This document shows positions 1 through 53,397 of a DNA stretch of 64,000 bases, one piece after another. The DNA comes from Monocercomonoides exilis PA203 (Eukaryota > Protista > Preaxostyla), in NCBI GenBank assembly GCA_001643675.2, contig LSRY02000009.1, forward strand, positions 558,001-622,000, in the 5' to 3' direction. Each line of letters begins with the position of its first letter. The first letter of the stretch is position 1. A model generated the notes under the pieces. The model did not search any database and was not told the DNA's origin. It saw only the letters and a program-made list of their open reading frames with translations. A program made the position numbers and the translations under genes.

Positions 1-1231
1 ATAACGTTTTTGTCAAATATCTTCCAAGTCACATAGATGACGCAAAGCTTCACTTAATGTTTTCTCCATACGGATCAATTGAATCAGCAAAAGTCATGGT
101 TTTATACCTTTTTTTCTTGTTATTTTCTATTTCTTTATTAATTTAAATCAGATTGGAAGAAGTACAGGGGAAAGCTTGGGAATTGGATTTGTTCGATTCT
201 CAAAGCCAGAAGAAGCACAAGCGGCAATTAAGGCTTGGGATAGGAAGCAATTTGACGGGAAAACATTACTCGTGAGGCTTTCAAATGTGATAAAAGAACC
301 AGAACCTGATCCTCCAAACATAAATCTTTACATCAAGCCATTGAGCTTTACAACAACGGAAGGTTTTTCCTTTTATTTTTCACAAAGAATTTTATTTTTT
401 TTAATTAAATTTTGAATGAACATTTTGAAATTAATCAAAGATGATCTATACAAGCTTTTTCAGCCTTATGGAAAAGTTGCAGATGTTAAAATCATGGTAG
501 ACCCTGTGACCCAAAGGAGCAGGCAAATCGGATTCGTTCGATTTGCTCGTATTGAAGATGCGATTATTGCTCGAAAATCTGTGGACGGCTCACATCTTGG
601 GCCTCTTTCTCCTCAACTGACCGTTCGCTTTGCGGAGACAAAAGCCAAAAAATTAGAGCGAATCAAACTGAAGCCAGAAAAGACGGACGGAACAGAAGAC
701 TCCGTCCAAATGCTGCTGGCATCTGTCTCTCACCAGCGAAAGACGTCTAATTTGAAGTATTCAGACGCCCAGCCTCAAACTTCGCAACAGCAACAGCAAC
801 AGCAGCAGCATCATCAGCGCCAGTCGAGTCTCCACCCCTTCCGCCGCAATCATCACATCAGCTCGTCCATCTCCCCTTCTTCTTCTTCTTCCACCTCCTC
901 ATCCTCCTCCTCCTCCTCATCATCATCTTCTTCCTCTTCTTCTGTCTCTAAGCATCAGTTAGTTGATGACTCTGCCTCTCGAAACGGAGCTGCGTCGCAT
1001 AAAAGCCAGTCTTTTTCTCCATCTCCGGCGTTTGCGTCGGCTTCGGCGTCTGTTTCACACAGAACACATCTTCTTTCACAGGAGTGGAGAGAGAAAGGGA
1101 AGGTGGAGGCAGCTAACAGGCAGAGAGAGAAAACAATTGATTCTTCTTATTCTTCCTCTTCTTCCTCCTCTTCTTTGGGAATGCCTGCTGTGCTGAGTGG
1201 AGTTAAAGCAACAGCTTCTGCTTCAGCTTAA
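1..1231 (+). CDS. RRM-domain RNA-binding protein (ELAV/Sxl-like tandem RRMs), 5'-partial; exons <1-98, 152-362, 441-1231
   Basis: Splicing GT-AG introns 99-151 and 363-440 gives NVFVKYLP...AKVM|IGRSTGESLGIGFVRF...NLYIKPL...TTE|DDLYKLF...RQIGFVRF, i.e. the RNP2/RNP1 motifs of two RRMs. The frame ends at TAA 1229-1231. Confidence 0.9.
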
Positions 1232-4200
1232 TTGTCACCCTTGTCAACATTTTTGCCTCTTCCACCACCTCCTCCATTTACGGCTTCTTCTTCTTCTTCA
1301 CTTTCTTCAACTTGTATTTCAATGAATTCTTCCCCTCCGAATTCCATTCTGCAAACAGCAATGAACTACAATCATCAGCATAGCCATCAAAACAGCCTTT
1401 CTGAACACAAAAAGCAGAAAGAACCGAAAGAGCTGAAAGAAACATCCAGTTCAATGCCAGCTGCTTTGGCTGTTTTAGACACAACTCGGACATTTTATGA
1501 CGGTTATTCCTATGTGAATAGCAATGCTGGTCATAGTGCTGATGGTGATGCTCGTACAAATGATAAATCAAATTTCAGTGCCAACGGCACAATCAATGCT
1601 GTTTCTGGTGCTCTTCAAAGCACAAGGCGTTCACTCCCTCTTCCTCCTCCTCCACCACCACCGACTTTTCGAACATCTTCAAATGTCCCATATAAATTAA
1701 ATTCTGCTGCAAACCCATCACATTTTTATTTGCCGGCAAATTCGAAATATACATCTTTATCCCAAACTTTGCCGGCATATCCTGTAAGTGCCGGAATTAT
1801 TCCTACAAATGCTTCTTATACTTCGAATGATTCATTTTCATCATCATCATCACCTTCTTCTTCTTCTTCAACATCTTCGTCCTCTTCTTTGTCTCTTGAT
1901 CGTTTGCAGCCTTTCAGTCGCATCAATTCCGATAGCACGTATCAAATCTCTGATCCCTCAGTTTTATTCTCATCTTCCTCAAAGAACAAAGAAAGCAACT
2001 TCACAATTTCTTCCGCCCATTTCAATCAGATTTCGAATGACCAGCTGCCTTCGCCAGAAGAAATGGCAGTGAATCGATCGACTCAGAAATTGGCAGATAA
2101 TTGTCTGCTTTCTGAGACGCAGGCATTGTGGGATGCATCAGCTATGAAGAAGAATTCTTCGTATTTGGCATCAAATGAGTTGAATAATAATAATAATAAT
2201 AATATTCCATATAATAATAAAATTAATAGTAGCAATAGTAATGATAGCATCACCAATTCTATTAACATCACCAAATTATGTACTTCATCATCATCATCAT
2301 CGTCATCTTCTTCTTCTTCTTCTTCCTTATTGTCATCATCAAACACCCCATTCTCTTCCACACATCATCTTTCCTCTGAAAATTCGTCCTTTTCCTCTCT
2401 TCCTTGTTCACCACAGCAACATCTCAAGACGCCTTCTCTTTCACAAACACATTCACAGACACATACGCAATCTCATTCACATTCAGAATCTTTATCAAAA
2501 TCTCAAACAGATTCTCAAACAGATTCTCAAACAGACTCTCAAACAGATTCTCAATCACAAGATCTTTCACCAGCACAAATACAATTTTTTGTACAAGCAC
2601 AAATAAGAGCAAATATTGAAGTACAAGCAGAAGCAGAAGCAAAAGCAAAAGCAAAAGCACAAGCACAAGCACAAGCAGAAGCACAAGCAGAAGCACAAGC
2701 GCAAGCACAATCTCAATCTCATTCAGAATCTCATTCACCATCACCATCACCATCAACCTCAATATCGCAAACACAAACACAATCACAGACACAGACACAG
2801 ACACAGACACAGACACAGACACAGACACAGTTATATGCTCGTTCATGTGTTATGCCACACACTCAGACACATTCTCATATACAGCCTCAGCTTCAACTGC
2901 AAAAGAAACAGAAACTACAGCAAAAGCATCAAAAACATCAAAAGTTACAAGAAATACAAGAAATTCAAGAAATGCAAGAGAAACAAGAGAAACGTGATAA
3001 ACAAGAAGATAAAAATGATATACAGCTTCAAATACCTTCTTCTCTATCTTCACGTCTGTCTGCTCCATTCATTCTTCCTCTCCCTCCTCCGCCGCCTCCC
3101 CTTCATTGCTATACAACAAAAACATCATCATCATCTTCTTCTTCTTCTTCATTTTCTTCTTCTTTTCCTTCTTCTGCTTCTGCTTCTGCTTCTCCATTAT
3201 TCAATTCTGCCTCCATCTCCTCCTCCTCTTCTTCTACCCTTATCAACTCTTCTGATTCATACGACCACAAAAACTTCATCAAGAAAAACACTTCGTCTAC
3301 TCTAACAAACATCTCTTCAACACAAATAATACCTTCTTCTTCTTCTCTTCCTCCTCCTTCTTCTTCTGCTTCTTCATTTTCTTCTTCTTTTCCTTCCTCC
3401 TCCTCCTCTTCTTCAAACCCATCTTCTTCATCCATTTCCTTCCCTTTCTCCTCCTCTTCCTCTTCTTCCTCTTCCTCTTCCTCTTCTTCTTCCTCTTCCT
3501 CTTCTTCTCCCAACAACCTCAGCAACCCTCGGCTGAGCATCACAAACTGCAGCAACTACAACACTTGCAGCAACAGCAGCGTCGCAAACGCATCTTTTCT
3601 CAATCCAGACGGAGAAATAAAACCAAGTTTCTCCGGCGGAGAAATTACGTCGTATTACTCCGACGCCCATTTCGTGCCGATCTCCAACGAGGTATTTCTC
3701 CGAAAGACGCTTTCATTCATTCCGACTTCTTCTCGCCCTTCAATCTTCTCTCCTAAAACTGCTCATAGGCAGCATTCTACTTCGACGTTCCCTTCGATTT
3801 CAAGGAAGGATTTGATTGAAGCAGATGGTGGTTCTTCATCATCTTCGTCTTCTTCGTCTTCTTCGTCGTCGTCTTCTTCTTCAGATCCACCTGCTTCTTC
3901 TTCTTCTTCCTCTTCCTCTTCCTCTTCCTCTTCCTCTTCTTCTTCTTCCTCCTCCTCCTCATCATCATCTTCTTCTTCCTCTTCTTCTCTATTAGGTTCC
4001 TCCTCCTCCTCCTCCTTCTCCTCCTATTACTCTTCCTCTGCTCTTTCTGCTGACACTTTTCTTTCTCCTCCTTTTTCTGCTGTCTCATCTGGCAATCTCT
4101 TTGACACCAATTCTTCTCTTTCTTCTTCCACCTCTTTGTTCTCCACTCATTCATTCACTTCTCCTTTGCTCTCTTCTTATGCTGCTCCTTCTTCTTCTTC

Positions 4201-4356
4201 GCCTCAGCTGTATTCGATGACTGCTTCTTCACCTTCTCCTTCGCCTTCGCCTTCTTCTCCACCTCCTCCGTCTTTGTTTGCTTCATCGTCGTCGTCATCT
4301 TCTTCTTCCTCTTCCTCTTCCTCTTCCTCTTCTTCTTCAAATACATCTGCTGCTGC

Positions 4357-4408
<52 letters not shown>

Positions 4409-7400
4409 CCTTCTTCTTCTGTTAATGATGCAATTATCCCTTCTTCTTCAATTCCTGCTGCATCTTCTTCTTCTTTTCCTTCCTCTTCTTCTTCTTCTTC
4501 TTCCTCTTCCTCTTCTACATCTCCATATTCGCCAGACACACCTTCTTCCAGTGCGTTCTCAATGACGCCTCGTTTGCTCACTTCCTTCTCTTCTCAAGCA
4601 TCTTCTTCAACTGCTTCATCATCTTCCTCCTCCTCCTCCTCTTCTTCTTCTTCTAATAATAATAATAATAATATCAATGATATTAATAATAATAATACTG
4701 TTGTTAATATTAATGACATGACAATGAATAATAGCAGTAATAATAATACTAATTCATCATCATCATCATCATCATCTTCTTCTTCTTCTTCTTCTCTCTT
4801 TCCTTTACCATCCTCTGCCCTTCTTGAATCTCTTAGCTGCTCCAATAACACAGCAATGGATGACAAATCTATCATTGAACAATGTAAACAGCATCTCCAT
4901 CACAATCAACAAATTCATTTATCTCCTTCTCCTTCACCTTCTCCTTCTTCACCTTCTCCTGCTTCTTCTTCTTCTTCTTCTTCTTCTTCTCCTTCATTTC
5001 CTTCTTCTTCATTCCCTTCTTCCTCTTTTCCTTCTTCCTCTTCTTCTTCCTCTTCTCCTTCTCCTTCTCCTTCTTCCTCCTCTTCTCATCATCATCATCA
5101 TCGCCTTCTCCACACTCAATCTGCCCATCAAATGCTCCAAGCACACCAATTGCACAAAACACACAAAATTCATCAAGTTAATCAACAAATCAGCCAAATC
5201 AACCAAATCAGCCAAATCAACCAAATAAACCAAGTTCATCAATCATTTCCTATTCATTCTAGTCATCCTCATAATAATAGTTCTAATGCTAATATTAATT
5301 ATCATAATAATAATACTAATAATAACAATAATAATAGTCCTTATACCAATAATAATACAAATAATAATACTAATACTAATACTATTACAAATACTAGTAA
5401 TTCTCCATATTCTAACCAATCTTTCCATTCCCTTCATTCCCTTCATTCTCTTCATTCTCTTCATTCGTCACAGCCCACCCTCTTCTCTACTTCTCATTCA
5501 TTTGGCTGTCCTTCTCCTCTCTCTTCCACTCCAAAACACGCTTCTTCGCCTCATTTTGACACATTTCCCTCTGATTTCTTATGTTCTTCTTCTTCTTCTT
5601 CCTCTTCCTCTTCTTCACCTTCTTCTTCCCCTTCTTTTCCATCTTCTTCTTCTTTCTCCTCCTCCTCATCCTCCTCCTCCTCCTCCTCCTCCTCCTCCTC
5701 TTCCTCTTCCTCTTCTCCTTCCCCTTCTTCTTATCCTTCATCATCATCTTCTTCTTCTTCTTCCTCTTCCTCCTCCTCCTCTTCTTCTTCCATGTTAAAT
5801 ACAACAGTTGCTTCTCAAACTTTCTCCTCTTTCGACTCCACAACTACAATTCCTCTTTCTTTTGCCTCTTCTTCTTCAATCTCTTCTTCTCCTCTTCCTT
5901 CTTCTTCTTCTTCTTCTGCTTCTGCTTCTTCTTCTTCTTCTTCTTCTTCTTCTTCTTCTGCTTCTTCTGTTTCTTCCATTTCTTCTCCTTCTCCACCTTC
6001 TTCTTTTGTTTCTAATAATTCTGGTAATTCACATACTTCTAATTTATCTAATCTCTCTAATCTCTCTAATATATCCAATATCTCTAATTCTTCTTCTCCT
6101 TTATCTTCTTCTACATCTTCTCCCTCTTCTTCTTCTTCTTCTTCTTCTTCTGCTTCTTCTTCTTCTTCTTCTTCCTCCTCTTCTTTCTCTCCTCTCTCTC
6201 AAAACAACTCCTCCTCCTCTTCTTCTTCTTCTTCTGCTTCAGCTTTAACTTCACCTAAACCTCTTTCTTCTTCTTCCAATCTCTCCAGTCTATCTAATCT
6301 TTCTAATCTTTCTAATCTTCCTTCTCTTATTCCTTCTACTTATTCTTCTCTTCTTTCTGATATAAATGCTACTTCTTCTTCTCTTTCCTCTTCTTCTTCT
6401 TCTTCTTCCTCCTCCTCCTCATCATCATATTCATCATCATCTTCTTCTTCTCCTCTTTCTCCTCCTCTTCTTCTGATGGATTCACTTTCAACTGTTGATT
6501 CAGCTGCATTTCCTACTGTTATTATTACTCCTTCATCATCATCATCATCTTCTTCTTCTTCTCCTCCTCCTCCTCCTTCTCTTCCTCTTCCTCCTCCTCT
6601 TTCTTCTTCTTCTACTTCTTCATCATCATTGATTCATGCTCTTCATCTGAATATGTCTGAATCTATTGCAAATGAAGAAGAAGAAGAAGAAGAAAAACGA
6701 AAAGAAGAAGAAGAAAAAGAAAAAGAAAAAAGAAAAGAATATGATGATATTTCATATTCTGTTCCATTAGCTTTTCATTTGCCTTTGGATGAGGAATTGG
6801 AAGAGGAAGGAGAAGAAGATAGAGAAAGAGAAAGAGAAAGAGAAAGAGAAAGAGAAGGAGAAGGAGAAAGAGAAAGAGAAAGAGGAGAAAGAAAAGGAAG
6901 AAAAAGAAATGTTGTTGTTGTTGTTTCATCTGATAAATCAGATGAAAGCATTCACTCTTCTTTTCATACTCCTCCTCTGACAAAACTGCAAGTTAGATCT
7001 TTATCTGAATCTTGTACACCATCTTCTTCTTCTTCTTCTTCTTCTTCTTCCTCTTCCTTTTTAGCTTCCTCCTCCTCCTCCTCCTCCTCTTCTTCTTCTT
7101 CTTCTTCTTCTTCTTCTTCTTCTTCTTCCTCATCATCATCTTCTTCTCCCTTTTCCTCTTCTATGTCTTCCCCCCTCCTCACAATCATATCCTTTGACCC
7201 TTCTCAGCTGTCTTCTTCATTCAACACAGCTGCTGCTGCTTCAACAACGGCGTCTTCTCCTTCTTTGCATTCTCCTTCTTCGGCTTTTCATTCTTCTGCT
7301 TTTCACTCTTCTTCTTCTTCTTCTTTTAATTATTCTTCTTCTTATGAATCTTCTTCTTTTTCTCCTCATATTCACGACCATTTCTTCTCTCTTATCCCTC

Positions 7401-8788
7401 CTCCTGATCAACCTGAATTTATCAATAATTCAAGTTCAGCTCCATTTGAATCTTCATTTGAATCTTCTTCTTCTTCTTCATTAAATCCTTCTTCTTCATT
7501 AAATCCTTCTTCTTCTTCTTCTTCCACCTCCTCCTCTTCTTCTTTCTCTTCTCTTTCTCTTTCTCTTTCTCCATCTGATGATATTCAGACACCCATTCAT
7601 ATGCCTCTTTCAATCTCATTCAATGAACAAACAGAAATGGATGAGATATCACAAGGAATTCAAGTTGAGCAGCAAATGTTAAAACTAGAGAAAGAGAAAG
7701 AGAAAGAGAAAGAGAAAGAGAAAGAGAAAGAGAAAGAGAAAGAGAATGACAAAGACAAAGACAAAAATAAAGAAAAGGAAAAGGAAAAGGAGAAAGAGAA
7801 AGGAAAAAGGAATGAGAAAAGGAGAGAACAAAATAAAGAGATCATAAAAGATACGAATAAATCTAATGAACTTCGAATATCACAGAAAGAAGAAAAAGAA
7901 GTCATAGAAGAAATCGAGGAAGTTGATGAAGAAGGGCAAAAATTGCGTTTTTCTTCTGTTTGTTCAGCAAATGCTCATGAACATTTAGAAAGCATATTAG
8001 ATGAAGATAATGTGATGGAAGACTCATTAAATAGGAAGGAATGCTCAATTGACTTGAATTTGACTTCGAATTCTTCTTCTTCATCATCATCTGATTCATT
8101 ACCATTGTCATCATCATCATCTTCTTCTTCTCCTCCTCCTTTTTATTCTCCTTCTGATTCATGTAATTCAAATATATCTTCTTCTTCCTCTTCTTCCCCT
8201 TCCTCTTCTTCTTCTTCTTCTTTCTCTTTCTCTCCATATTCTTCATTATCAATTTCATCATTATCATTATCATCATCATCGTCTCCATTAACATCAGTTT
8301 TAATTTCAAACACTTTACCATCATCAACAGCACATTCAACGTCAACATCTTCGTCATCATCATCATCATCTTCTTCTTCTTCTTCTTCTTCCTTATCTTC
8401 TTCTGATTCATCAAATGATAATTCTTCTTCTCTTCCCTCTCCCTCTCAGCAATCGCTGGAACTTCCGTTATCAGTTGATATTTCATCATCTACACCTTCC
8501 TCTTTTTCATCATCTTCTCATTCCTCTTCTCCTTCTTCTTCCTCTTCTCCTTCTTCTTCCTCTTCTCCTTCTTCTTCCTCTTCTCCTTCTTCTTCCTCTT
8601 CTCCTTCTTCCTCTTCCCCCTCTAATCTGACTGCTGATGCTGAGTCTAATGCTGTTGATGCATCACTATCATCACTGTCATCGTTATCATTGCCCTTATC
8701 AAATTCATTGACACACCCACATTCTGGTAATGCCTTCGATATACTGCCACAATCACCCAGCCTTCATGCTTCTCCTCATCCTCCTTAG
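1232..8788 (+). CDS. Giant Ser/Asn/Gln/Glu-rich low-complexity ORF (2518 codons), in frame with the RRM gene and probably its C-terminal tail
   Basis: Starts at the codon right after the RRM TAA in the same frame. Open for 7.5 kb; (AAT)n tracts are always read as Asn rather than TAA; composition matches the end of the RRM ORF. Confidence 0.65.
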
Positions 8789-10579: not shown

Positions 10580-11414
10580 TTATTTTATTTTATTTTATTT
10601 ATTTCCTTTTTATTGAAACTTCTTATTAATAGTTATTTTTCATTTTAAACTTAATGATTTAGTTATTTGTCATCAGCTTGTTTAATTTGGTTTCATTTTT
10701 TATGTATACAGAATATGTTTGTTTTCCAAAGCTTTTCTTTTCTGTTCTTCTTCTTCTATTTTTTTTTTTTTAATTGAATTTTGAAAAATTTTTTTTCATT
10801 TTCTTTTATTTAAATTTTTTTTTTATTTTTTTTTTTACTTTCACATGTGCTCTTTTTCTTCAAATTCTCACTCAATTGAGAATAATGAGGATATGTATGT
10901 TATTCTCAATGTATTAATGTCATTGTCATTGTCATTGTCATTGTCACTGTAGCTAAGTTTGCCTTCACAATTTCATAGGTGTATTTTCTTTTCTTCACAA
11001 ATGATCTTTTGCTTTTTAATTTTTTTTTTTGTTGGGTATGTCTTTTGAGGTTTTGTTTTCAAAAAAAAATGGATAGTTTTATTCGTTTTGCTCCAAAATA
11101 ATTTTTTATGCAAATATTCGAAGATTCTTTTGATAAAGATGTGTTTTTTCCTTTCATTTTTTCACATTCCTTTTTCAATGTTTTGTTTCAAAATACAACC
11201 TTTTCATTAAGAAAATATCTTTTTTTCATGCTTGACGCACATTTTTTAATCATTTAATTTATGCAAACGATAATATCATACTTTTTTCAGAATTTGAAGT
11301 TTCGGTAAAACTCAAAGAAAGCTTCATTCGAAAAGCTTAATTGAATTATGGTAATTTTAATTCATTGCGAATATATAATTTATAACATCAAAACGGAAGG
11401 CCACTATTTTTTTG

Positions 11415-14400
11415 ATGAGTAACGATTCAGAAGTTGCATCAAATAGTTCTAGATCGACGCGACAACATTCTTCCATTCGCATTCAAAGATTGGAAGGAAC
11501 TGATAAACTGTGTGAAATTTCACTATTATTTTGATTCAATTTGTTCTTTTTAATGTGGCATTCACAGAATTTTTCCTCTGTTCCAGATTTTAGCAGACGT
11601 TTGAGATTTTTTTGTATTTACACATTTTTATAAAAAAATATTTTCACTTTATTCAGAGACCGACTCAAGTTCCTCATTCAGTTGCAATTTTTTCATCTAT
11701 TTTGGTAGCAATCCAATGGATGTTTATTCCTCTCAGAAACGCTACATTGTCTAATATTTATGTTACGCAATTTTGCAAGATAGTTGGGTTTGCACCTTTT
11801 TATCTTTTTATAACTGAATAATTTGTTTTGCTCTGTATTTTGATTTTTTCCACATTAATAACAGCCTCTATGTTGACCCCTCATTCTATACACCATCTTT
11901 GGCAAATCTTTTTGTTTTTATTACACTTTCAGTTCTTTTGCCATTATCAATTATTATTACTCTTTCCGTTATAAGCATATTGCAACGAAGAGAAAAATCT
12001 ATTCCAAGGGCATGTATTAAAATCATTCAAACTGTAACCACAGTTGCAACTTCTATTGCAGTTGTACCAGCAGCTGAAATTTTATCGAAACCTTTTCGTT
12101 GTCATATGGGTTTTTCTTTGGATTTACCATTTTGTTCGTCTCCAACGTCAACAATAGTAATGATGATATTTGGAATAGTAACTTTAGTACTTATTTTTTT
12201 TGCTTACGGTATTTACGCGTATTTTTGTGTTTGACTACCAGCCCTGGAGCGGGTACCTGATCGGCTCCCGGAAAGGCACGTATCTCGCCACTCTCTTTGG
12301 TGGGGTTATTGTCGATGCCATTCTGGGCACGCTTTTGATGGACTCTGCCCCCGTGGCGGTGTCTGCCATCCACACCGTCATCTCCTTTGTGCTGATTGTG
12401 CTGCTTGTGTACATGCTGCCTTTCTACCGCCTGGACGGGAACTACCTCCTCGCCATCAGCTGCGGCTTTGCTCTGGGCGGTGGGGTTGTCTCGTTTGTGG
12501 CGCCTCTGCTGGACTCCCTCGCGAAGAGGCAGTTTGTTCTCACAGGGAGCAGAGCAGTGTGGGTGGTGCTGTATTGGGTGCTGGTGGTGGCGATGCCGGC
12601 GCTGTGTTCGGCTGTCTGCTGTGTCTGTGTGAAGAAGAGATGGAACAGGACAAGTGTGGTGAGGCCTCTTTATAAGAAGAGTGAGGAGAACGAGAAGAAC
12701 GGGAAGAATGGGAAGAAGACTGAAGTTGTAGGCTTTTTTGTGCAGAGCAAAGGGAAAGTGCTGCTTTCGTATGATGAGACGACAAACACTGTGACAAGCG
12801 ATGTGTTTTCTTGTGGCTCTCCGAACAATCCGTCGATTTCTGTGTCTCCTGCAAACTTCCCTTTCTCTTCTTCTTATTCTGCTTCTTCTTCTGCTGCTGC
12901 TTCTAATTCTTCAATGAAGCCATCTGCTAGCTCTTCCATGCTTCGCTCTGCTTCTCCATTCAACCGCACAATATTTCCTTCTCTTTCTTCATCCTCTTCT
13001 TCTTCTCACAGCCCTCGTGTCCTCTCCTCACATCTATCTACAGCCAGTCTGTTAAATCAGCCATCTCCTTCACCTTCACCTTCTCTTTCTCCTTCTGTTA
13101 ATCCTTGTCCTTTCTCCTCCTCCTCCTCTTCTTCTTCTTCTTCTTCTTCTCATTTGCCTCTTCAGCTGGCTCGCCCAGCCGAAACCTCTTCGCATTCAAC
13201 GACAACAACAACTTCTGATGGGCTAAATAACAATGCTTCTTCTTCTTCCTCTTCTTCTTCTTCTGTGATGTCTTCGCAAGAAGGAATATCTTCTTTTAAT
13301 GTTCGCTCCACTTTTCAGTTGAATTTGAAAGATAACAACACAACTTCACAATCATCATTGCCACAATTATCATCATCTTCTTCATCTTCCTCTTCCTCTT
13401 CCTCTTCCTCTTCATTATCAACAACAACAACAACAACAACAAATTCTGCTTCTTCTTCTTCTTCTTCTTCCAACTCTTCCTCTCTCTCCACACCCATCTC
13501 CACCCATCCACAGCCATCTGTAACTCCACTCCGATCCCATCTCTCCTCTCAAAACATCTTTCAGCCTATTTCTCTCTCAAAAACAGGCTCCTCTTCTGCA
13601 TTGGGCGCTGCTCCGGCGCCTTCTGCCTCTCCTTCATTCAATCAGACACACTCTCAAACACAATCACAATCACAATTGCAATCACAGTCACAATTACGTA
13701 CTTTAAATCATTCATCATCTTCTTCTTCTTCCCTTTCTTCTACAAAGCCTGCTTCCTCTTCCTCTTCCTCCTCTTCCTCTTCCTCCTCTTCCTCAAACGT
13801 CTTCCACATCGGCCCTCTCTCCCACCACATCCAAAGCCCTTACCCGCAGCGCCCTCTCAGCACCACCTCCTTCGACTCCGTGGATTCGATGTATGGCTCC
13901 CCCAAATCAACCAGCATGATGTACTCACTCACACCAAAGCAGGGAAACTGCCTCGGAAGGCAGCTTTCTGTGGACGAGGCGCTGAGAAATCCAGAGCTCC
14001 TGAAGATGGTCACACAGCCGATCAAGTCCTTCACACGCCTGGAGCTTTCGCTGCGGTTTTTGAATGAGCCCGAGCTGAAGTCGCTGGGTAGCTATCGATG
14101 TATGATGGAGTTTTCAGACCGGATCTACCAGAGGATGCTGAGGAGATCGAGATTCACTCACAACTGCAGTGTAGTTGTTTCCTATTGCATCTTTTTATTG
14201 AACCGATGCCTCGTCAAATGCAACGTGATGGGGTCATCTAATGCATTGTGCACACCTAAATGCAGAAGAGAAGACAGACAGCAACAAACAGCTGGGGCAG
14301 GAATTGGAGCTGGAATTGGAGGAGGAATAGGAGTGGGAGCAGCAGGCTCAATGGACGATGAGAAAACCAGCCTGCGCAACGAGAGCGACGAGTTCAACAA

Positions 14401-17400
14401 GCTTGCAGCGACATCTGTGGCTGAACTGTCGAAGCTGATGACGAAGATGCAGTCGTTGATAGACAAGGCGAATGCAATGTGCCCTGGGATGACGAATCGC
14501 TGGGTGCTGTCTTGTTTGGATCAGCAGCTGGGGTCAATGTCGTCGTGCTGGTTGCTCAAGTTCAGTGGCGAAGGAGGCAACGGAATGAATGGAATGAATG
14601 GGGTGAGTGGGACGAGCGGGATAGGAGGAGAAGAGTTTGGAGACGACAGCTCGTGGCTGAGGCTGAACAGCGGGATGGGGGCGAATGTGGTGCATGGCGG
14701 CTTCTCCATCCAGCTGCAGCTGGAGCAGGCGAACAAGCTGAGTGAGCTCGCACAGGCACACTTGGCAATGGCCTTTACGCTTCTGTCAAGGAAAGTGGTG
14801 AACATTCAGCGGGTGATGGAGCATATTGTGATTGGCACGAAGAACGGGGACGAGGCGAAGAAGATGTACATGTCGATGCTGGAGATCAGTCCAGACAATC
14901 CGAACATCATCAGACAGCTGGGCATCCTCCTTCGAGATGTGCATATGAACAACGACATTGCAGCCCTGTTGTTTCACGAGGCAGATGCGCTGGAGGAGAA
15001 CCAGAACGACAGCGACACACTGATTGCAGACAATGTGCAGGAGATGATGCCTCATTCGCTGCTGCAGGACGGCACATGTCTGCTTGCAGGGGAAGAAGAG
15101 GCTGAAGAAGGAATGGGGAAAGGAGATGGAGTGGTGCAAGTGATGTCACACAGCTATTACACTGATGTGCATGAGATGAATGGAATGGAGCCGAATGAAG
15201 AGTCCATGGGCGAAAGTGTGTTGAACAACGATGGCAGACACAGATATGCAGGGAGGACTCTATACGATAGCAGAGATTATGGCAACCTCCACAACGAACT
15301 GCCACCGCCACAGTACAGCCACAAGGCAGGAAACAAGTCCAGATCCAAAGCACACCAGGCATCTGCCCTTTCAGCCATCAAACTGCGCGCTCAGCAGTCA
15401 GCAGTGCAGCCTTCTCGCCACAACACGATGATTCTGTCGACTGTGCTGCTGGCGTTCACTCTGGTGGCGTCGTGTGCCATCTTCTTCATCTGCTGCTTCA
15501 CAGAGCAGAGCGAGTTCGACAAATCGTCTGTGTCGGCTGCGAACATCCGACTGGGCGGGTCTGTGTTATACAGTGTGAACAAGGCGAATGAAAGGATCCA
15601 GCACATCCTGCTCATCAGCGATCCAGAGAAGTATTTGAATCCGACGCCGGATGAGATGAGGCAGATAGAAGAAGACAGGGCGATGTTGTTGGAGGTGTTT
15701 CTGGATATTGTGTCGAATTACTCAGAATTGTACATACATTCTGCAGAGATGCCCTTCTGGAAAGGGGAAAACGAGCATTATTTGCAACTGGACTTGGTAA
15801 AAGGGGATATCAACCACCACATCCGGCATGTGGCTGAACATCCGTTGTCATTGTTGTCACTCATTGCGTGGGGAAGCGATGCAATTGCGAACTTTGCGTT
15901 TGACCAAGGGAATGTGTTTGAGAACATCAAGGACTTTAAGTCGCTTTCTGGGCAGGTGGCGATGAATGTGCCGTTTACAATGACCGAATCGTTCAAGTCT
16001 GTGCTGAGCTGGAACAACGACCAAGTTATGAAGCGGTACAAAAGCATCACGACGATGGTAGATACATCACTCGTCACTCTGTTTGTGCTGCTTATTCTGT
16101 TTGGGATCAATCCGCTGATATTCAGCTCGCTGCAGCTGATACGGCAGAGGAAGACAGCAATGAAGAAACTGTGTTTTTTGAGTCAGGAGACCGTCATGCA
16201 GACACTGGAGAAGCTGACCAATGGGAACATAAGCAGCAACAAGAACAACAATAATAATAACAGCAACAAAGACGGTAAAGATGGTACAAACACAGAGAAC
16301 AATGATAATAACAATGATTCCAACCACAACAGCAACAACTCCAGCAGCTTGAAGCACTCTGGGTCTTCTGAAAACGTGCTCAAATCAAACAAATCTGGGC
16401 CACCCAGTGAATGCGAACTGGACGAAAAAGACGTTATTGACGATGGGATCAGTGGCAGTGTGCACAGACATGGAGGAGGTAATGGAGCAACCAGCCCCAA
16501 GCGCATGAGCGGCAGAGACGGAGGTTCAGACCATACACAAGACTCTTCATTTACCTCCCCAACGTCCTCTATCACGACGCTCAGTCTGTGTCCTTCGCCT
16601 TCTCCTGAGTCGTTTATGTCTCCCTCTCCCCATTCATATGCCAACCGCACCACTCCACACAAGGCCAAATCCAATCTGACTGGTCTGGGTGATTCCAGTG
16701 CCAATCTGGTGCCTTCACTTTCATTCACTCCTGTGTCGCAGCTGTCTCCACAGGCAAACTACGCTTCTCCTCTCCAATCAGCCCAGGGCACTTCTTCTTC
16801 CTCTACTTCATCCATTGCTGCCAACCTGATCCAGTCAACTTCTCCTCCGCCACAGGGAAATCTGTCTCCAACCGCCCATCCAACATCAATCTCTCCAGCG
16901 CTCAATTCTCCTCTTTCCAACCTCACTCGCTCTTCCTCCAACCTGGCATCTGTGCATTCCAGTGCCATTCTGCCCAATCCTGTGTTCCAGACTGGGCCAT
17001 ACCCTTACACAGCTGCTGGGAAGTTGGGCGATGCTCCGCCGATGTCAACCACGCCTTCGTTCAGACAGCTGCTGACTTCGCAACAGAAAGAGTCGCAGTC
17101 ATCTTTCGCATCTCAAGAACTGTCTCCACCACCCTCACTGTCACCAGCACACTCCCCAACATCGTCAATGAGCACGCTGCAGACATACATGAACAGCCAC
17201 GGATCGAAAGCGGATCTGCGGATTGGAGTGACACTTAGCAAACTGGCACATTCAAAGGGACAGAAAGGGAAAAGGAGACATCATCATCGGAGTGGGAAAA
17301 GTGGAGAATACAGTTCTGATTCGAGTGCAACTGACTCCACACGCATTGCCCATTCATCCTCTTCTTCACAGAAAAGCCTGCTGCACACGCCGATCAGTGC

Positions 17401-19057
17401 GTTTGAGGAAGAGGAGAGTGAAAAAAGCAGCAGCTCAGAGGGCAAGCATTCGATGATGGATGGGCAAGGGAACAGCCATGAAGGACACAAAAGAAGACAC
17501 AAACATCGATCGCGGATGCAGAAGTCGCGTGAAGAAGAAGCCGCAGAGGCCGAAAAGGAGCTTGCCGAAGAAAACGCGCGGCAGCTGGCTGCGAGGAAAG
17601 CCGACCTGGAGCAAGGGATCAGGCACTTGGGAGGCATCATCTCGAAGTCTGTGTATGTGCGGATGATGTTTGGGGCGCTGCTGTTTCTGATGGTGTCGAC
17701 TGTGTTTTTCCTGTTCTGCATTCTGTTTTCAGAGAATTTGCCAGAGCTGACAGCGAAGATCTTTGTGGTTGGCTATCTACGGACGCTGTGCATTCAGACA
17801 GCTGCGCTGACGACGATGTTTGTGTCTGGGGAGTACTACCCGCCGCTGAGCGATGCACAAATATTTGACTATCAGTCGTTTTCGTCTCCGGCTATTCTGA
17901 ACTCGACTTTTATTGCATCAAAGAACAACCTGCGATCGGTGATTGTGAATCTAGTGCTGCACATGTCGAAGGTGTTTGAGCGGTTTTTGAATGGCCACGA
18001 GTCAGGCACACTGACTGGAGATAGCATATTGGACAGCATCATCATCTCGAAAAGCCAAGGAACAGAAGAGTGGCTCGACAATGTGATCACAGGCGGGTCG
18101 ACTTCGAATGCTCTGAGCAGCGCAATGGCTAACAGCGCAGACGACATGATAGAGGCCACAAGGAACATTGGCTTGGACGAGCTGATGGGGCGGTTTGTGG
18201 ACTCTGTAAATGAGCTGGCGTACACACGCGACGATGAGCTTAATGTGAACAATGCGAAGTATCGGTACGTAATCGTCACTGCCTCGGGACCTATTATGGA
18301 CAAGTGCACAACAATCATCACGCGGTTTGAGGAGCAGCTGGACACGTTCACAAGCCAGGCAGTGCTGAAGCTGTATGTCATATTCATAGCTGTGTTTGTA
18401 GTGGACATTCTGATTGTCAGTGTGTTTGTTCTTCCAGTCCCCTTCAAGTTCATCAACATCTCCAAGTCTACTACTCTTTTGTACCAGTTTGTGGAGGCGC
18501 AGACATCGAGTATCCAGTGGAAAGACGATTTCTTGACTGGCCTCCCTGTGATTGACGATATGCACAAGGAGATGCTGGAGCAGTGCAACACGCTGCAGAA
18601 GTACAGGAGAGAGGACATGTCAAACAACAAGCTGCTGTCTGCGGTTGATCAACTGTTGATCTCCTTTGCTACACATTGTGCTGTTGAGGAGAACGTGATG
18701 AGTGAATACAACATTCCAAGCAATGTGGTGAAGCAGCACAGATCTGCGCATTTTATTGTGTATCGAGGATTGTTTAAGTTGTATGAGGAAGCAGAACAAG
18801 GAAAGATGACACCGCATCAGATAGACACAGCCATCTCAAACATCATCCACGAAGACATTGGCAATGCGGATCTAACATTGGCGCCATTGCTGCAAATAAA
18901 GATGTCGAAAAGAGAAGCAGAGAAGCACGTTTCTTTGGATAGGTTGCAGATGCCTGGCTCTCTTGTTGCTTTTCTTGATGGGCCAGATGGGAGCCTTTCA
19001 AACCAAGCGAGATTTAAAAAGTTTTTGAAACGGATTAATCAGAATGTAAAGTTTTAA
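11415..19057 (+). CDS. Large multi-pass membrane protein, TmcB/TmcC-like (N-terminal TM bundle, TPR-like segment, further TM pairs) with C-terminal hemerythrin domain
   Basis: ATG 11415 followed by small exons and three short introns up to ~11864; hydrophobic helices 11650-12630; TPR-like AKKMYMSMLEISPDNPNIIRQLGILLRDV...AALLFHEADALEE; TM segments near 15430, 16070, 17660 and 18370; hemerythrin motifs at 18512-18890. A +1 frameshift in the T-run at ~12194-12201 joins ORF 11899-12234 to ORF 12200-19057. Confidence 0.8.
18512..18890 (+). other. Hemerythrin (bacteriohemerythrin-like) di-iron domain within the membrane protein
   Basis: IQWKDDFLTGLPVIDDMHKEM...THCAVEENVM...QHRSAH...IHEDIGNAD matches the W..(F/Y)..G...ID..H / HxxxEE / HxxxH / (H)xxxxD pattern. 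Confidence 0.85.
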
Positions 19058-20044
19058 GTTCAGTAGATAATTTGTTAATCCACTTTTCTTTACTTTTTAT
19101 TTTCTTTTTTTAAAGCATTATCTTGTTGTTTTGAATTAATTTTTGGTTTTATAATTTTTGGTTTTATTTGACGTTTTTATTTCACATATGTTAAAGTAAA
19201 TTATTTGTATATCACGTTTCTTTGAATTATTCACTTCATAATTATCTGATAATTCTTTTCTTCGCAATTATTTTGCTGTGCTTCACAGTTTATATTTATT
19301 GAAGTTAGCATATGTTAAAAATTTACATTGAAATTATAGATAATGTATTCCATCTTGTATGTAAGTTGAGATATTTTTATTTAATCAGCTTTGTTAATTC
19401 CTTCCTCGTGTTTTTCTATGCATATAGTATTTTTTATAGTTTTAGCAACTTAATTGACTTTTTTGATATTTTCAAGCATTCATTCAAATAGTCTTTATTT
19501 ATTTAGTTTTCTTTAATCGGAGAACGTCATACATTTAATTAGCATTTAAGTTACAATCTTCATGTTTTTGTGATATATGTATTTTCGTACCGTTTGGATA
19601 TGTTTTTAAGAATTCGAAATTTATTCCTTTCTTTCTTTCTTTTCTTTTCTTTTCTTTTTAAATTGAGCATGGATCTGTGTTTATTACATTGGATTTAAGT
19701 TTGCATTACATACAATAAATATTTGTTTTATATTTGTAATGCAAAGAAAGAAAGAAAGATATTCATTTAATTTTTTAATGTCTGGAACAGATATCTTCTT
19801 GAAAATTCAAAATATAAAGCACAAAAATTACCTTAAAGGTTTAGTAATTCTATGTTTGAAATATGGGGCAAAATTTTTGCAAATATGAAAAAAACTGAGA
19901 TTTGATCCAAACTTTTTCAACAATCTTTCCATTATAAATCAACCTAAACTATGCAAATAATTACAGAAAAATTATAAGGTTGAGAAAAATATTTATCAGA
20001 GAAGAATGGAACAAAATTCATGAAGCAAAAAATATTGCACCACT

Positions 20045-21496: not shown

Positions 21497-22930
21497 ATGC
21501 AAAATGCTGCACTTTCTGGTTCATTATTTTTGAAAAAATCCAGGAGAACAATAGTACAAAAAAGTTCACTGGTTTGCGGGGATTGTTATGATGAATTTTT
21601 TGATGATTGCTATTTTTCCATTTTCATTGTTTTTGAAGAATTGTTTTCTGAGCTTGGAGATTGCGACGAGGATGAGCAGAAACAGAAAATCATTGAAATG
21701 AATGAACAGGCGGAAAAAATGGATAGAAATGAATTCAATTTTTTTTTCAGAATCAAACCGTTCGACAAAATTCATAAAATGATTGATGAAAAGAAAATAA
21801 ATATTGGAAATATCATTCTGCTGCTGAAGCACATTGGATACTGTAAAACATTAAAGCGCACAAGCAACTCAAATTTTGAGCATTCTTCTTTGGGCAAAAG
21901 ATTTGAGGAGATGATTGTTGAAGAATACAAGAAAAAGGAGGAAAGGGATGAAAGACTGCTGGCTGACCTTTGCGAATGCTATCTTTTGCTTAATGGTAGG
22001 GTTTCACTCGAATTACTTTCGATCTGCGCATCATGCATTCTGAAAGTCGCTTTGAACAAAGAGGAAAACGAGAAAGTTCAAAAGGAAGTGGAAATGGCTT
22101 TGCTTGCCTCGAATTGCTTCGGATATCATGTATGAGTGTTTTCGCTTTCTTTTTGTTATTTTTTTAAATAGAAAATAGAAAAAAAACTGTATTTGAACGA
22201 AATGACAGAAATAATCCATTATCACCAGGAACATCACAATTTGACGCGACTTGCGTATCAGTCGGCTTGGAAGTTTTTAATTGACAGATTACTCAACGAC
22301 AGATACTTGGAAGAAGTTTTTGTGAATGAGCTGCATTTCGTGAGAGAGGCAAGAAGTGAATTGGATGAGCTTTCGAAATGCATTGATTGGAAGGCAAAGG
22401 AAGAAGGAGGAGGAAGAAAAGAAAAGAAAGAGATGGATATAATATTGGGTTGGCTGCAAATATTGGAATTTTTCTTCAGTTTGTGCCAGTTGTGGAATGA
22501 AGAGTTTGCCGAACTTGTCAGCAGCATTGTTCAGGTGTTTCGAGCAGCGAAAGATAATTACGGAGAAATTAACGATCAGTGCGTTCATTTATTGATACTT
22601 ACAGAGGACAAAAGGGGTGTGAAAGACTTACTGAATGGGGGAGCAGTTGATGCTTTTATGGAGGAAATTATTCAATCAACGTTGAAAGATGGAAGAGTTT
22701 GGGATTTGTTGGTATTTTTTGATTTGATTTCATGTCGATTGAAAAGGAAGAAAGGTGATGAAAAGGAAGAAGCTAAAAGAAAGTTGATGAAAATGGAGAT
22801 ATTTGGCAAGATGGAAGAAGAAGGATACGAAGACATCATCACAAGCTTCTCTGAAGTGATAGATTTTTTTTACAGAAAACATTATCATGACATATCATTG
22901 AATATTTCAGATTATTTTGTGAATATTTGA
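21497..22930 (+). CDS. Lineage-specific multicopy helical (ARM-like) protein, copy 1; start uncertain
   Basis: Introns 21572-21638 and 22130-22171 join the ORFs in frame. Motifs ELFSELGDCDEDEQKQKI, LLLKHIGYCK, DLCECYLLL, HHNLTRLAYQSAW and KMEEEGYED are shared with copies 2 and 3. The ATG of copy 3 (ATGCAGGAA) is ATCCAGGAG here. Confidence 0.75.
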
Positions 22931-30953: not shown

Positions 30954-33900
30954 TTATGCTCGTTGTAGAAGGGCGACTGTCCCTTGTTTGCCTGCCCTTC
31001 TCCCTGACTCTTCCAACTCTTCCGACTCCTCTGACTCCTTACAGCACATCGCATCTGTCATCGTCATTACCATCGCCTCAGCCGGAAACTTCCCAAAAAA
31101 TGTTCGTTTCAGCTCCATCAGCGTGGGTCGTCCATCAGCCTTTGCCGAAAGACAGCTCTGCATCACCCCAAACAGATCTGATTCCTCTACCAGCTCCAGC
31201 CTCGGCCTCTCCCCGTTCACAATCTTCTCCCCTGCAATCACTGCCTCATACTCTCCAAACGGAACATGAAGCGTCAAACACTCCCACAGCATTATCCCAA
31301 TCGAGAATACCACTGACTCCTTTGTCGCTCCCATCTTCTTGTTGATCAGCAGCTCTGGCGCTTTCCACCTCAGGCACTCTTTTTTGAAATCATCCTCATC
31401 CTCAAACGCTGATGAAGGCAGAGAGTCATCCTCATCATTATCATCAGTTGCAGATGTCACGACGGTTGATGATGAGATGGAGGATGAATCTGAGTCTGAA
31501 GATGAGAAGTCTGAATGCATAACAATGCAGATCACCATGTGCTCGGAAAACAGCACAATGTGTGGACTCAGGTTTTCTAAGGATGAAAGTGGATTTTCCA
31601 TTTCATCAAATAAGTGCAGTGCTCCATTCACCACCCAGAACAAGACCTGTGCAGCTGTCAGCTCTCTCTCCTGCAGAGTGCCTATCGCCATCTCCTTCTT
31701 CTCGTTCCTTCCATGAAGCAACATGAACAGCGAATCCCTCAGATCCACAATCAGCTTCTCATGAGGAGATGAACAGGCCATAGCATCCACCAGATTCGAC
31801 ATCGACGAGGTGGTGGGGCACAGTTCTTCTCCCCGAACAAATGTTGAATCTGAATCAGTTGTTGACGTGGAAGAAATTGATGGTGATGGAGTTCTCTTCC
31901 TTGTTTCCTCCTCATCATCAACCTTCTCCAGCATCCACTCTGGAATCTTGTCTGAATCTCTTCCCAATATATATTCGGTTGAGCCACTCTCAGACAGAAG
32001 ATGCTCAGATGACTCTGAGTGTCCCAAGCTTTTCTCAAACACCCTCTTCTTCATCCTCTCTTCATTCTTCTTCTCTGTCTCTCTCTCAGCTCTCCTCCAC
32101 TGCTCCACTGGTGACATTTCCATCGTCACCATCTCAAACGCCTTCGGATCTTTTCTAATATTATCATCAATAATCTCCTGTATTTTTTCGCTTCTTCTTT
32201 TGCTTCCTCCATCGAAAAATTGTGAAAATTGAAATAATTACCAACAATACAATGAAAACTGCACATACAACCACAAAAAACAACCAATTAGATTTTCCTT
32301 CTTTTCCTCCTTCAACAACTTTATCATCTCCTTTTGCCTTTGGTTCTGTTTTGTTCTTCAGAATCAGCGGAGAACTTGCGGCCAATTGCTTTCCAAACGA
32401 AATCATCACATATTCCTCTGTTTCATCTGAAGCCAATGAAATATTTTCTGATGGAATTCTTCCAATCAGCTCAGTTTCTGATATGAAACTGTCTTCCTCA
32501 AAGTGATATGTCTCAACCAACTCCACATCCCCTGTTTTATACACAAGTTTGAATGACAAATCACATGGCACAAACAGAGATCCCTTGAATTTAATTCCAA
32601 TGTTGCCTCCATTTTCATTCACAGAAACATCTTCCAGTTGGGGAATGAAGAAAGGCGATGAACTTTCTCCTGCTATCCCTCTCAAATCACATCCATCATT
32701 CAAGATTCAAAGAGAAGAATTGGGCATCAGTCCATCTCCTCCCTTCAAGCTCGAAATGGTCAGTGACGCAGAATCTGAACAAATGATGTTTCTACAAAGA
32801 GAAGTGTATTTTTCAATGAATGGCTCATTATTGATGAATTCTTTTTTCTCAATTGTCATATTACCAGAAGATATGGATAATCCGCCTAATGAAGAATTCG
32901 AAATAATCACATCCTTCATCACTAACGAAGAATTTGATGAATGAATAAGAGACCCATTCCATTGACAGATATCTGTTATTGTATTCATATCCTCAGTTTC
33001 ACTTTCTTTTGCAAGCATTCCAAAAAATCGACAAGAATCCATTGAAACATCCTTCATATCATGCACCTCAACAACACTTCCTTTGTCAGACAGAGAATTG
33101 CAATTTGTGCAAGAACAGTTTGAAAACTCGAAATGAGCAGAGGTTGATGAAGCTGAGAGAACAGAAGCGCCTTCTGAATTCCTTGAACAGTTGTTGAATG
33201 AGGAGATTCCAATTGAAACTATTCCTGAAGTGGATCCATGAATCGCAATGATGCAACCTTCAGACAGATTCACTCCATCCGCAGATACTCCATTCAATGC
33301 AATTCTTCCACAATTGCCAATCTCAAACACGTTTGTTGCCGATTCAATTTGTTTCAGTCTCACATTCATCAATGAAATCTCATCTCCACAAAACAGAAAC
33401 AATGATTTCTTGAATGAAAGCATTGATACTGAGCAGTTATCAACATGAAGAATTCCATTTTCGATGTTCAACAATGTTGAATTGAGAACAACAGCTTCAA
33501 TGTTTTCTGATTCTCCAATCGAAGAAAAACCAACAAATGAAAGAGAGAGCTGACCATTCATTCCATGAATGATAGAATTGCCTGAATACAAAAATGACTG
33601 AACAAAATTGAATTTCAATCTCTCAATCCGAACATTCTCTGAGGTTGCAATGAGATTTCCCTCGTTTGTTATTGCTGAGTTCAGATACACCAAAGCGGCT
33701 GAATGAGATTGAAGTGAGCGGATGATCACATCCTTTGCTTCACATTTCCCAACAATAATTGTTTGCCCCAAGATCAACAGCTGAGAGTACAGAGATGGAA
33801 TAATGTGCATCACTCCCTCACTCAATGAGTGACATGGAATACTTGACTCTCCACATTGCTTGCTATCTGTGTGGTTACCTGTTGCTGAAGACACAAATAT

Positions 33901-36900: not shown

Positions 36901-38709
36901 TTGTATCGTTGAGCTTAAATTACTTTGGCCATAAACAGTAAAACTGTCTGTTCCACAATTAAAACTATTTGTTTCGAATATTGTTCCTGTGAGTATTTCG
37001 ATATCAGTCACATATTCAGGAATAAGTTGGGTAAAACAATGGCTGATTGTGCTTCATGGATGAGATTCGTTTAATCCGCACACACTTGTGTCTTTGGCAT
37101 TCGGCTGCGTTTGAACTGAAGAGACAAACCTAATTCTTCCAAAATCATTTCGAAGCCATTCACTTTTGTCAACAATTGAAGACGTATATACACTAACTCT
37201 CCTTGTCGTTTGCCTTGTTGAATAGCAACTTGGATCAATGTTGTTTGCTGCTGAACTTCGAAGAAAAATATCATGCCCAGCTTCTTCGCACGTGTTATTG
37301 TGAAAAAAACAGAAGAAAAGCAAAATTCCATCATTATTTGTGTTAATTAACATCCCGATAGCGCCTCCTCCACACATTGAATAACAATGACAAAAGAGAC
37401 AATTCGAAATAGCAACTTGATCAGTGCAATTCCAATGTTCAATTGCTCCTCCCCAAGAATTTGAAAAGTTAAGTGCACAACATTTCATAAAAAATGAATT
37501 AATAATGCATTTCTTCTGCCTCAGAGTTTTTGTTGGACGCAGATCAATTGCTCCTCCGTCATTTCCTGAAAAACAGTTTTGAAAAGAACAATCATTAACC
37601 ATTGATTGCACATACACAAACTCTGCCATAATTCCTCCTCCTCCAAAGTCCGAGGCGACTTGTGCTGAGCATTGAGTAAATAATGAATGAAGAACAATGC
37701 ATTCTGCGATTTTCAAAGCATATATTGCTCCACCTCTTGTCGAAGAAATGCATCTTTCGAAAGAACAATTTTCAACAGTGAGAAAAGCATTTTCATTGTC
37801 ATGAACAAAAAGGGCCCCTCCTTTTGGTGCTGTGCAATCAATCCATTCACACAACGAAAAAGACTGACAATCTGTTGTGTCCATTCATTGTTTTCTTTCA
37901 AGATCATTCATTTCTCTTTTCCCGAAGTTTATTGTTGTGTTTTTGCAGAAGAATTCATGTGAAGAATATGACCCACTTGAAATCCCTCCTTCAAAAACAT
38001 TCACACATGAACAAATGAGGCAGTTCTCCATCGAACTTCGAAAACATGAATGCTCCATGTAATAATCACTTTTCTTGGAAGATTTCACAGACATGTTCCT
38101 GAAGGAACAGTCATTGATCTGTTCGCTGTGGCTCTTTCATGAAACAAGAAAATTGTCTGATGAAGAAATATCCAGATCCGAAAGCATGGAATTTCTCAAA
38201 TCCAATGTATTCGAATCATCAGATGAAAATACGAGGCTGGAAGGGTTAATATTCTTTTGGGGGATCAAACTCATGTTTGTGAGGCATATTGACCCACTTT
38301 GCAAATAAAACGGAGATGATGATTTTTGGTGGGAAATGCAGGAATCCAGCATTACCATCGACTTTTCCGTTATTAGCAAAAATTGTGAGGAAGAACGTTC
38401 AATCGCCACATTTTTCAGTTCAGCTGAAGTGTTGAATAATCTCAAAAATGTATTAATTGCTGTTGACCCAACTTGCTGCAATCCTTTGGTTTCGCAAAAG
38501 GTGTTCCTCTTTTCTTCATTTTTTAATTCTCTGTTTGTCTGAAAATGTGCATCGTTTGAATTGTCTCCATTCGAATAAACAGGGTTATTATGCAATTGAG
38601 AAATAAAGCGAGTATGTTGGCTTTCGAAAAAATATTCTTGTGTGGCATCATGCAACATTAATTTCCCGGCAAGGAGCAAACATGCGAAAAGAAATAGATG
38701 CATACTCAT
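30954..38709 (-). pseudogene. Large type I surface protein: signal peptide, beta-helix (pectin-lyase/Pmp-like GGA[I/L] repeats), TM helix, kinase-like C-lobe (pseudokinase); interrupted
   Basis: Signal-like MSMHLFLFACLLLAG; repeated GGAI/GGG motifs and CG-x4/5-PC motifs; TM WLFFVVVCAVFIVLLVIISIFTIF; RWKAPELL...VFSIGIMLWECLTLHVPF kinase subdomains VIII-IX without HRD/DFG. Four in-frame TGA (38137, 37885, 37054, 32707) and one frameshift near 32190. Confidence 0.85.
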
Positions 38710-53238: not shown

Positions 53239-53397
53239 TCGCAATAAAGCGAATCTGTGAACGCAAGGAGCACGTTTGCTCCATAATAATGAGTATTGAT
53301 CTTGAATTATGGGTGGTTTAAGATCAAACTTCGCTAACGAATTGACTTCTTGTTTACACCATTGTCCGCAGTTGAAATGACGCTAAATCCTGTTAGT

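Follow-up and report, generated by a model that had tools for sequence, protein, structure and literature searches.

A frame break in a transcribed Monocercomonoides exilis gene for a predicted TmcB-type membrane receptor with a hemerythrin tail

We analysed a 64,000-nt stretch of the Monocercomonoides exilis PA203 genome (contig LSRY02000009.1, positions 558,001 to 622,000; hereafter the window), with positions counted from its first letter, and focused on a gene on its + strand at 11415-19057. The host, supposed to be an anaerobic protist in an original prediction made from the sequence alone, is indeed one: M. exilis is an amitochondriate oxymonad and an anaerobic gut protist. Paralogues taken from the same genome match NCBI MONOS proteins identically. 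Sequence comparison places the locus in a family, found across oxymonads, of putative membrane receptors with about 12 membrane passes and a cytosolic hemerythrin domain. Both DNA and spliced RNA show the frame break at ~12200 to be real, and we hold with fairly high confidence that the copy in PA203 is a transcribed, recently inactivated allele.

Gene structure and the frame break

Spliced RNA contigs from two runs of a separate study (X5 and X8; contigs matched to 11250-12800) begin at 11394 and show three GT..AG introns as joints. With these introns removed, the ATG at 11415 reads in frame with 11865-12234, and the 5′ part of the gene is laid out as follows:

11394..11414 (+): 5′ leader; start of the spliced RNA contig, not a mapped transcription start site (RNA contigs)
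11415..11509 (+): exon 1, ATG at 11415 (RNA contigs)
11510..11567 (+): intron 1, 58 nt, GT..AG (joint in RNA runs X5 and X8)
11568..11598 (+): exon 2, 31 nt (RNA contigs)
11599..11656 (+): intron 2, 58 nt, GT..AG (RNA contigs)
11657..11787 (+): exon 3, with the first transmembrane (TM) segment at ~11678 (RNA contigs, hydropathy)
11788..11864 (+): intron 3, 77 nt, GT..AG (RNA contigs)
11865..12632 (+): remainder of the N-terminal 8-TM bundle, homologous to paralogues on either side of the break (paralogue alignment, hydropathy)
12194..12201 (+): T8 run, one base above the expectation from the paralogue alignment; real frame break (DNA run X1, RNA runs X5 and X8, paralogue alignment)
12232..12234 (+): premature TGA ending the 5′ frame, with a product of 208 amino acids (aa) (spliced frame)

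Downstream, an uninterrupted + strand frame extends over 2,289 codons (12188-19057), and given this long continuous frame an alternative genetic code is unnecessary. Reading through the break, with an X in its place, yields a product of 2,482 aa from the ATG at 11415 to the stop at 19057; the spliced mRNA itself has no continuous frame. Twelve paralogues, none of them shifted at the homologous place, align ungapped across the junction once one base is taken out of the T8 run. The X1 DNA contig, at depth 81, aligns with the window across this run with zero gaps, and so do the spliced RNA contigs of X5 and X8; all sequencing runs across T8 are probably of the same strain. The original prediction had raised the prospect of an untranscribed gene with a real frameshift at ~12200; the frameshift is real, and the gene is transcribed and spliced. 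As the break is the single lesion in 2,480 codons, it appears to be recent, and because it truncates the frame at 208 aa, this copy probably yields little or no full-length protein in PA203.

Logan contigs from other runs agree at 100% with the 3′ part of the gene (13765-19597), and their unlike 3′ ends suggest that they derive from RNA; no contig among those compared here bridges the Ser-repeat stretch at 13137-13765. In many paralogues, the intron-bearing 5′ part (first 150-250 codons) has a low G+C content of third codon positions (GC3), which climbs to 0.6-0.9 beyond it, and relative to these paralogues the step at ~12235 is unusually sharp in the 11415-19057 gene. A chimeric join at this step was ruled out, since the paralogues rise similarly and contigs span the position. 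Two introns that would restore the frame (12157-12187 and 12157-12241, both 3n+1 and GT..AG) were likewise rejected, as they are missing from the RNA contigs and would excise part of a conserved TM helix.

Three other readings of the break were weighed. The gene might be functional through slippage at the U8 of its mRNA (ribosomal, +1 or tandem -2, or transcriptional), with a regulated low yield of full-length product. U8 is read as two Phe codons that could pair again once the frame has shifted, the run is the sole T run of seven or more within the coding part and the single lesion of the whole gene, and the mRNA is present and spliced. Programmed recoding is nevertheless disfavoured, because the shift site is not conserved and the 12 paralogues are continuous at this place, because T7-T9 runs stand in frame and harmless in several paralogues, and because RNA structure downstream of T8 is not significant (z of -0.69, -0.8 and -1.75). 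It should be added that +1 frameshift sites need no stimulatory structure. With homopolymer gain being the commonest spontaneous indel, and with no paper on oxymonad recoding turning up in our literature search, we regard slippage as improbable. No true orthologue was found, and scanning metagenomes for one of the junction region returned none. Separately, run X9 (a gut metagenome of 2025) contains 9% of the sampled words of 11400-12700 and possibly represents another Monocercomonoides strain.

Very little probability attaches to a split gene, in which a 208-aa piece with four TM segments would be followed by a downstream protein from an internal ATG (12338 or later). In-frame ATGs do stand at 12338, 12413 and 12593, and GC3 rises sharply near 12235; however, the RNA contig is unbroken across the junction, the paralogues show the same low-to-high rise in their 5′ parts without a break, and reinitiation after an open reading frame (ORF) of 208 codons is poor in studied eukaryotes. 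An assembly error concealing an intact gene deserves scarcely any weight, for although homopolymer frameshifts occur in Nanopore/454 assemblies of the M. exilis genome (PMC8767320) and one minor contig of run X2 (depth 14 of 111) has one T fewer at T8, that contig drops single bases at many further places, and the X1 DNA contig agrees with the window, as do the spliced RNA contigs, which come from two runs of another study.

Protein architecture and the hemerythrin site

Beyond the N-terminal bundle, the encoded protein comprises the following elements:

12660..13900 (+): Ser-rich low-complexity linker, 37% Ser (composition)
14714..15010 (+): TPR_TmcB, PF25474 (Pfam profile match)
15443..16123 (+): predicted module 1, comprising a TM segment, a four-helix-bundle outer domain with a beta-hairpin, and a TM segment (AlphaFold model)
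16250..17600 (+): second low-complexity linker (composition)
17669..18433 (+): predicted module 2, comprising a TM segment, a four-helix-bundle outer domain and a TM segment (AlphaFold model)
18503..18919 (+): hemerythrin domain with six of seven canonical ligands, Asp at the H101 position (18854) and Ile at the W97 position (sequence and structure comparison)
18920..19057 (+): family-specific two-helix C-terminal extension with an invariant Pro, then the TAA stop (alignment, AlphaFold model)

This layout bears out the outline of the original prediction, which had described a TM bundle, a TPR-like segment, later TM pairs around probable extracellular domains, and a hemerythrin domain after the last TM helix. 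Hydropathy indicates eight N-terminal and four later TM segments, in the same layout as in relatives; the TPR_TmcB match scores 34.3 bits, above the cut-off of 27; the later TM pairs flank two predicted outer four-helix bundles; and the hemerythrin starts ~20 residues after the last TM segment. In the AlphaFold models (pLDDT of 90.9 for module 1 and 90.5 for module 2), both bundles run continuous with the flanking TM helices. The top structural matches of module 1 are the ligand-binding domains of Tsr and Tar (Z of 11.5-12.3), and those of module 2 include PilJ (Z of 13.1), PcaY (12.4) and NarQ (10.5), with Z of 10-13 being a range in which helical bundles may match through common arrangement. 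Between the two modules, hhalign detects weak homology (E of 9e-6, probability 83).

In keeping with an outer location, 95% of relatives have a Cys pair in module 2; this copy has lost both Cys (Ser at 18104 and Ala at 18128). Among 37 conserved columns it deviates from the family at 12, more than any other of the 43 aligned rows, and it forms the longest end branch in a quick tree. Pfam searches found no PAS or cyclase domain in the gene or in family members, and no HAMP or MCP signalling domain in the protein. An Atlas search by shape retrieved bacterial hemerythrins and PilJ/HAMP receptors, while a search by features gave leads of at most 0.88, to ciliate and chlorophyte clusters.

The region 18503-18919 is predicted to adopt a true four-helix hemerythrin fold. 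Its AlphaFold model (pLDDT 90) superimposes on DcrH-Hr (2avk) with a Z of 16.3 and a root-mean-square deviation of 1.8 Å over 131 residues at 20% identity, and hemerythrin structural matches reach TM-scores of 0.79-0.85 when normalised by target. The sequence itself matches DcrH-Hr (E of 1e-4), and its PF01814 score of 23.9-24.3 bits falls just below the gathering cut-off of 25.3.

In hemerythrins, three His bind one iron (Fe1), two bind the O2-binding iron (Fe2), and a Glu and an Asp bridge them, giving the canonical motif H-HxxxE-HxxxH-HxxxxD of five His, one Glu and one Asp (PMC9388753). Six of these seven ligands are present here, namely H25 (18563), H54 (18674), E58 (18686), H73 (18737), H77 (18749) and D106 (18869), and the H101 position (18854) reads Asp (GAC), as the original prediction had noted; at least seven paralogues carry the full motif. 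The protein is identical in seven independent Logan contigs, three of which were compared at 100% DNA identity over 13765-19267/19597, so the Asp is no sequencing error. Because H101 is a ligand of Fe1, its replacement would spare the O2 side and add a carboxylate to the other iron.

An acid stands at the H101 position in four proteins: Asp in this copy and in a metagenome protein (P0100, from JGI sample 3300042596, which we take to belong to a termite-gut series), and Glu in two M. exilis paralogues, on contigs C2 and C25. The four form one clade in the quick tree (SH-aLRT 98; four rows among 43), share a residue other than Trp at W97, and are 22-27% identical to one another; E58, H77 and D106 are invariant across the 43 rows. 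A His two residues upstream of the H101 position (His99, at 18848), noted at the outset and considered here as a possible substitute ligand, did not hold up: its position reads His, Lys, Lys and Asn in the four proteins, and on a continuous helix, as modelled, His99 would face away. The conserved feature at H101 is the acid itself, and His99 is probably no replacement ligand.

The oxymonad family and the role of the tail

At least 69 TPR_TmcB loci occur in the M. exilis genome. A module-2 match follows 66 of these 69, and 56 of them extend into the hemerythrin region, as judged from coordinates; in all, 58 loci reach a hemerythrin-like tail, ~33 of which have hemerythrin matches on their own and the others through extension of a longer profile. 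All 18 PF01814 matches in the genome belong to this family, and 13 other loci pass the PF01814 cut-off directly. None of the four cyclase loci of the genome lies within 15 kb of a TPR_TmcB locus, and a PAS_9 search of the genome gave no match, though an exon-wise search is no proof of absence. The idea that hemerythrin stands in place of the usual sensor or output module thus holds insofar as no PAS or cyclase was found, but the replacement is not a one-off, hemerythrin being the usual tail in oxymonads (56 of 69 TPR_TmcB loci).

A profile search of 1.84 billion proteins, of which we considered the best 150 of 28,726 matches, returned the same layout in Blattamonas nauphoetae, Streblomastix strix and gut metagenomes, with the two-helix C-terminal extension limited to oxymonad matches; the other long matches examined in this set were bacterial MCP or SpoIIE fusions, and the family is likely restricted to oxymonads. 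Word searches with the window protein and with P0016 returned no relatives, which reflects a limit of sensitivity and not absence. The same architecture is widespread in oxymonads, as the proposed search for paralogues revealed, along with the Glu at H101 in two of them. Canonical sites occur in all three genera (Monocercomonoides, Blattamonas and Streblomastix), those of M. exilis including ones on contigs C11, C25, C35 and C50. Proteins that lack H54 form a clade with support of 100 (24 of 43 sampled proteins, from three genera), and both O2-side His are lost in scattered members, such as L040 and L041.

Other broken copies are found in M. exilis (the C47 copies of L031, and genes with stops on C60, C61, C76 and C1), as expected for a birth-and-death family. 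Two of them, L033 (C47:470890-473500) and L034 (C47:218864-219500), are 95-97% identical to an intact canonical paralogue (C47:111706-119655), one having a large internal deletion and the other stops and indels. A further paralogue, L030 (C80, ~953100-953400), is split by a frame change in a long GAG/GGA microsatellite, which may be an assembly artefact. In Blattamonas, P0022 (KAK2960695, 3,353 aa) contains two tandem receptor-plus-hemerythrin units with different ligand sets, either as a real fusion or as a merged gene model.

The hemerythrin tail may sense O2, NO or iron. In an intact member of the H101-acid clade, the di-iron site would keep its O2-facing iron (H25, H54) unchanged and hold the other iron with a carboxylate at H101. 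The extra negative charge would favour Fe(III), such that O2 or reactive oxygen species would oxidise the site instead of binding reversibly; alternatively, loss of iron might unfold it. DcrH and Bhr-DGC as well as Bhr-HD-GYP offer a precedent, sensing redox state through fast autoxidation (PMC9388753). The ~20-residue helix after the last TM segment would couple the state of the hemerythrin to the four-helix-bundle modules, and because there is no enzyme domain the output would most likely be protein binding, through the TPR or the C-terminal helices, or an activity of the 8-TM bundle. In the PA203 copy, a recent one-base slippage insertion in the T run would have cut this receptor short at 208 aa.

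That the locus is both a recently inactivated allele and one of a redox-, O2- or iron-responsive receptor is a conjunction for which we judge the case to be evenly balanced. Several points weigh against it. AlphaFold models carry no metal geometry, and the topology rests on hydropathy, on the fold and on a Cys pair conserved in relatives. Since one or both of the O2-side His are missing from most family members, the tail may have been conserved for a structural or single-metal function rather than for gas sensing. On the side of the allele, RNA contigs contain the broken mRNA at good depth (29-35), which a nonsense message under strong degradation would not have to show, and contigs drop rare variants, leaving room for a small slipped fraction.

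Were the hemerythrin instead a degenerate bundle, metal-free or with a single metal and serving interaction or output, the outer bundles would sense gut ligands and the tail would relay the signal. The loss of H54 in the large clade described above and of both O2-side His in L040 and L041 would be accounted for, the domain does occupy the place of receptor output domains, and the outer domains resemble chemoreceptor ligand-binding domains. We consider this unlikely, given that the H101-acid clade retains six ligands and swaps the seventh for another metal-binding residue, that the bridging E58 and D106 are invariant, and that all three genera have fully canonical members. Lower still do we place an iron-status sensor following the logic of FBXL5, a protein whose hemerythrin-like site of four His and three Glu senses iron. 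Folding only with iron, the tail would then govern how stable or active the membrane protein (possibly a transporter) is, in agreement with a carboxylate-richer di-iron site and an 8-TM bundle without assigned function, but both the fold and the sequence conform to the bacterial DcrH type and not to FBXL5, and the Pfam search gave no degron or transporter family match.

Extended from the redox-responsive receptor to the family, the ~60 oxymonad membrane receptors with graded hemerythrin sites (intact, H54-less, half-site and H101-acid) would constitute a eukaryotic O2, redox or iron sensing array without an enzymatic output domain, a reading that we put forward tentatively. That such an array should also include this copy as made by U8 slippage, in what would be the first case of recoding in oxymonads, strikes us as highly doubtful.

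Neighbourhood, known systems and significance

Elsewhere in the window, four regions merit mention:

416-1231 (+): RRM frame (PF00076, E of 7e-12) ending in a single TAA (1229-1231), then an in-frame Ser-rich low-complexity ORF of 2,518 codons (1232-8788), either a long 3′ untranslated region held open by repeats or read-through
21497-22930 (+): two in-frame pieces parted by TGA stops, with no Pfam family; likely a decayed copy, presumably resembling a large M. exilis-specific helical-repeat family
32161-38751 (-): ~2,200 codons in one frame, interrupted by TGA stops only, with 1,448- and 276-aa pieces that have no Pfam match; a kinase fragment occupies 30957-32237 (-)
53300-59400: GC-rich block with a reverse transcriptase and RNase H frame at 55546-56781 (+), probably a retrotransposon, with frames broken by stops

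Among known systems, DcrH of Desulfovibrio vulgaris, an MCP-hemerythrin, is likewise a membrane protein of an anaerobe: TM pairs enclose an outer domain, and a cytosolic hemerythrin with this same fold makes up the C-terminus. Outside oxymonads, the nearest entries among the matches listed are bacterial MCP-Hr and SpoIIE-Hr fusions. The M. exilis protein differs from DcrH and Bhr-DGC as well as Bhr-HD-GYP in lacking HAMP, MCP, GGDEF, HD-GYP and SpoIIE, and from bacterial hemerythrin sensors in that a single chain unites a eukaryotic TmcB scaffold with a TPR and a pair of receptor modules, with Asp for H101 and extra C-terminal helices. With Tar/Tsr, PcaY, PilJ and NarQ both outer modules share the four-helix bundle, yet at 5-16% identity and Z of 10-13. 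TmcB/TmcC-like proteins (PF25474) have in common with it the TPR_TmcB domain, above cut-off, and the multipass layout; those of other eukaryotes typically carry PAS and/or class III cyclase, which were not found here, where a hemerythrin tail is present. A word search for TmcB relatives reached only oxymonads, with no Dictyostelium TmcB or TmcC among its matches. FBXL5 likewise employs a carboxylate-richer di-iron bundle for regulation in eukaryotes, but it is a soluble F-box protein with other ligand spacing and was neither a sequence match nor a top structural match here.

Oxymonad entries of the same family and layout bear automatic names that each cover one domain: 'putative hemerythrin' (Blattamonas KAK2957477), 'Hemerythrin-like domain-containing protein' (Streblomastix KAA6387000) and 'TmcB/TmcC TPR repeats domain-containing protein'. 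In the M. exilis genome paper, hemerythrin appears solely among the oxygen-stress proteins, and the main text is silent on a membrane fusion, TmcB or cyclase (PMC6759080). As all hemerythrin matches of the genome fall in this family, that entry may refer to receptor tails. In a 2016 survey, 4 of 135 eukaryote genomes had O2-binding hemerythrin, and ligand variants were called uncharacterised (PMC4919030). Our literature search, with most subscription papers outside its reach, found no paper joining TmcB and hemerythrin, and for hemerythrin and Blattamonas only PMC6759080. The architecture, suspected from the start to be new, is apparently undescribed; new at this locus are the Asp variant with a relative from another organism, the rejection of the His99 idea, the disappearance of both outer Cys and a frameshift supported by reads.

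For work in cells, the intact paralogues (those with Glu on C2 and C25, and the canonical ones on C11, C25, C35 and C50) are better suited than this frameshifted copy, whose isolated hemerythrin domain is still a valid Asp variant. The natural ligand variants of the family, with His replaced by Asp or Glu on one iron and His lost on the other, are ready-made tests of first-shell tuning of di-iron chemistry, a matter named as open (PMC4919030), and the family as a whole bears on how amitochondriate gut anaerobes perceive oxygen.

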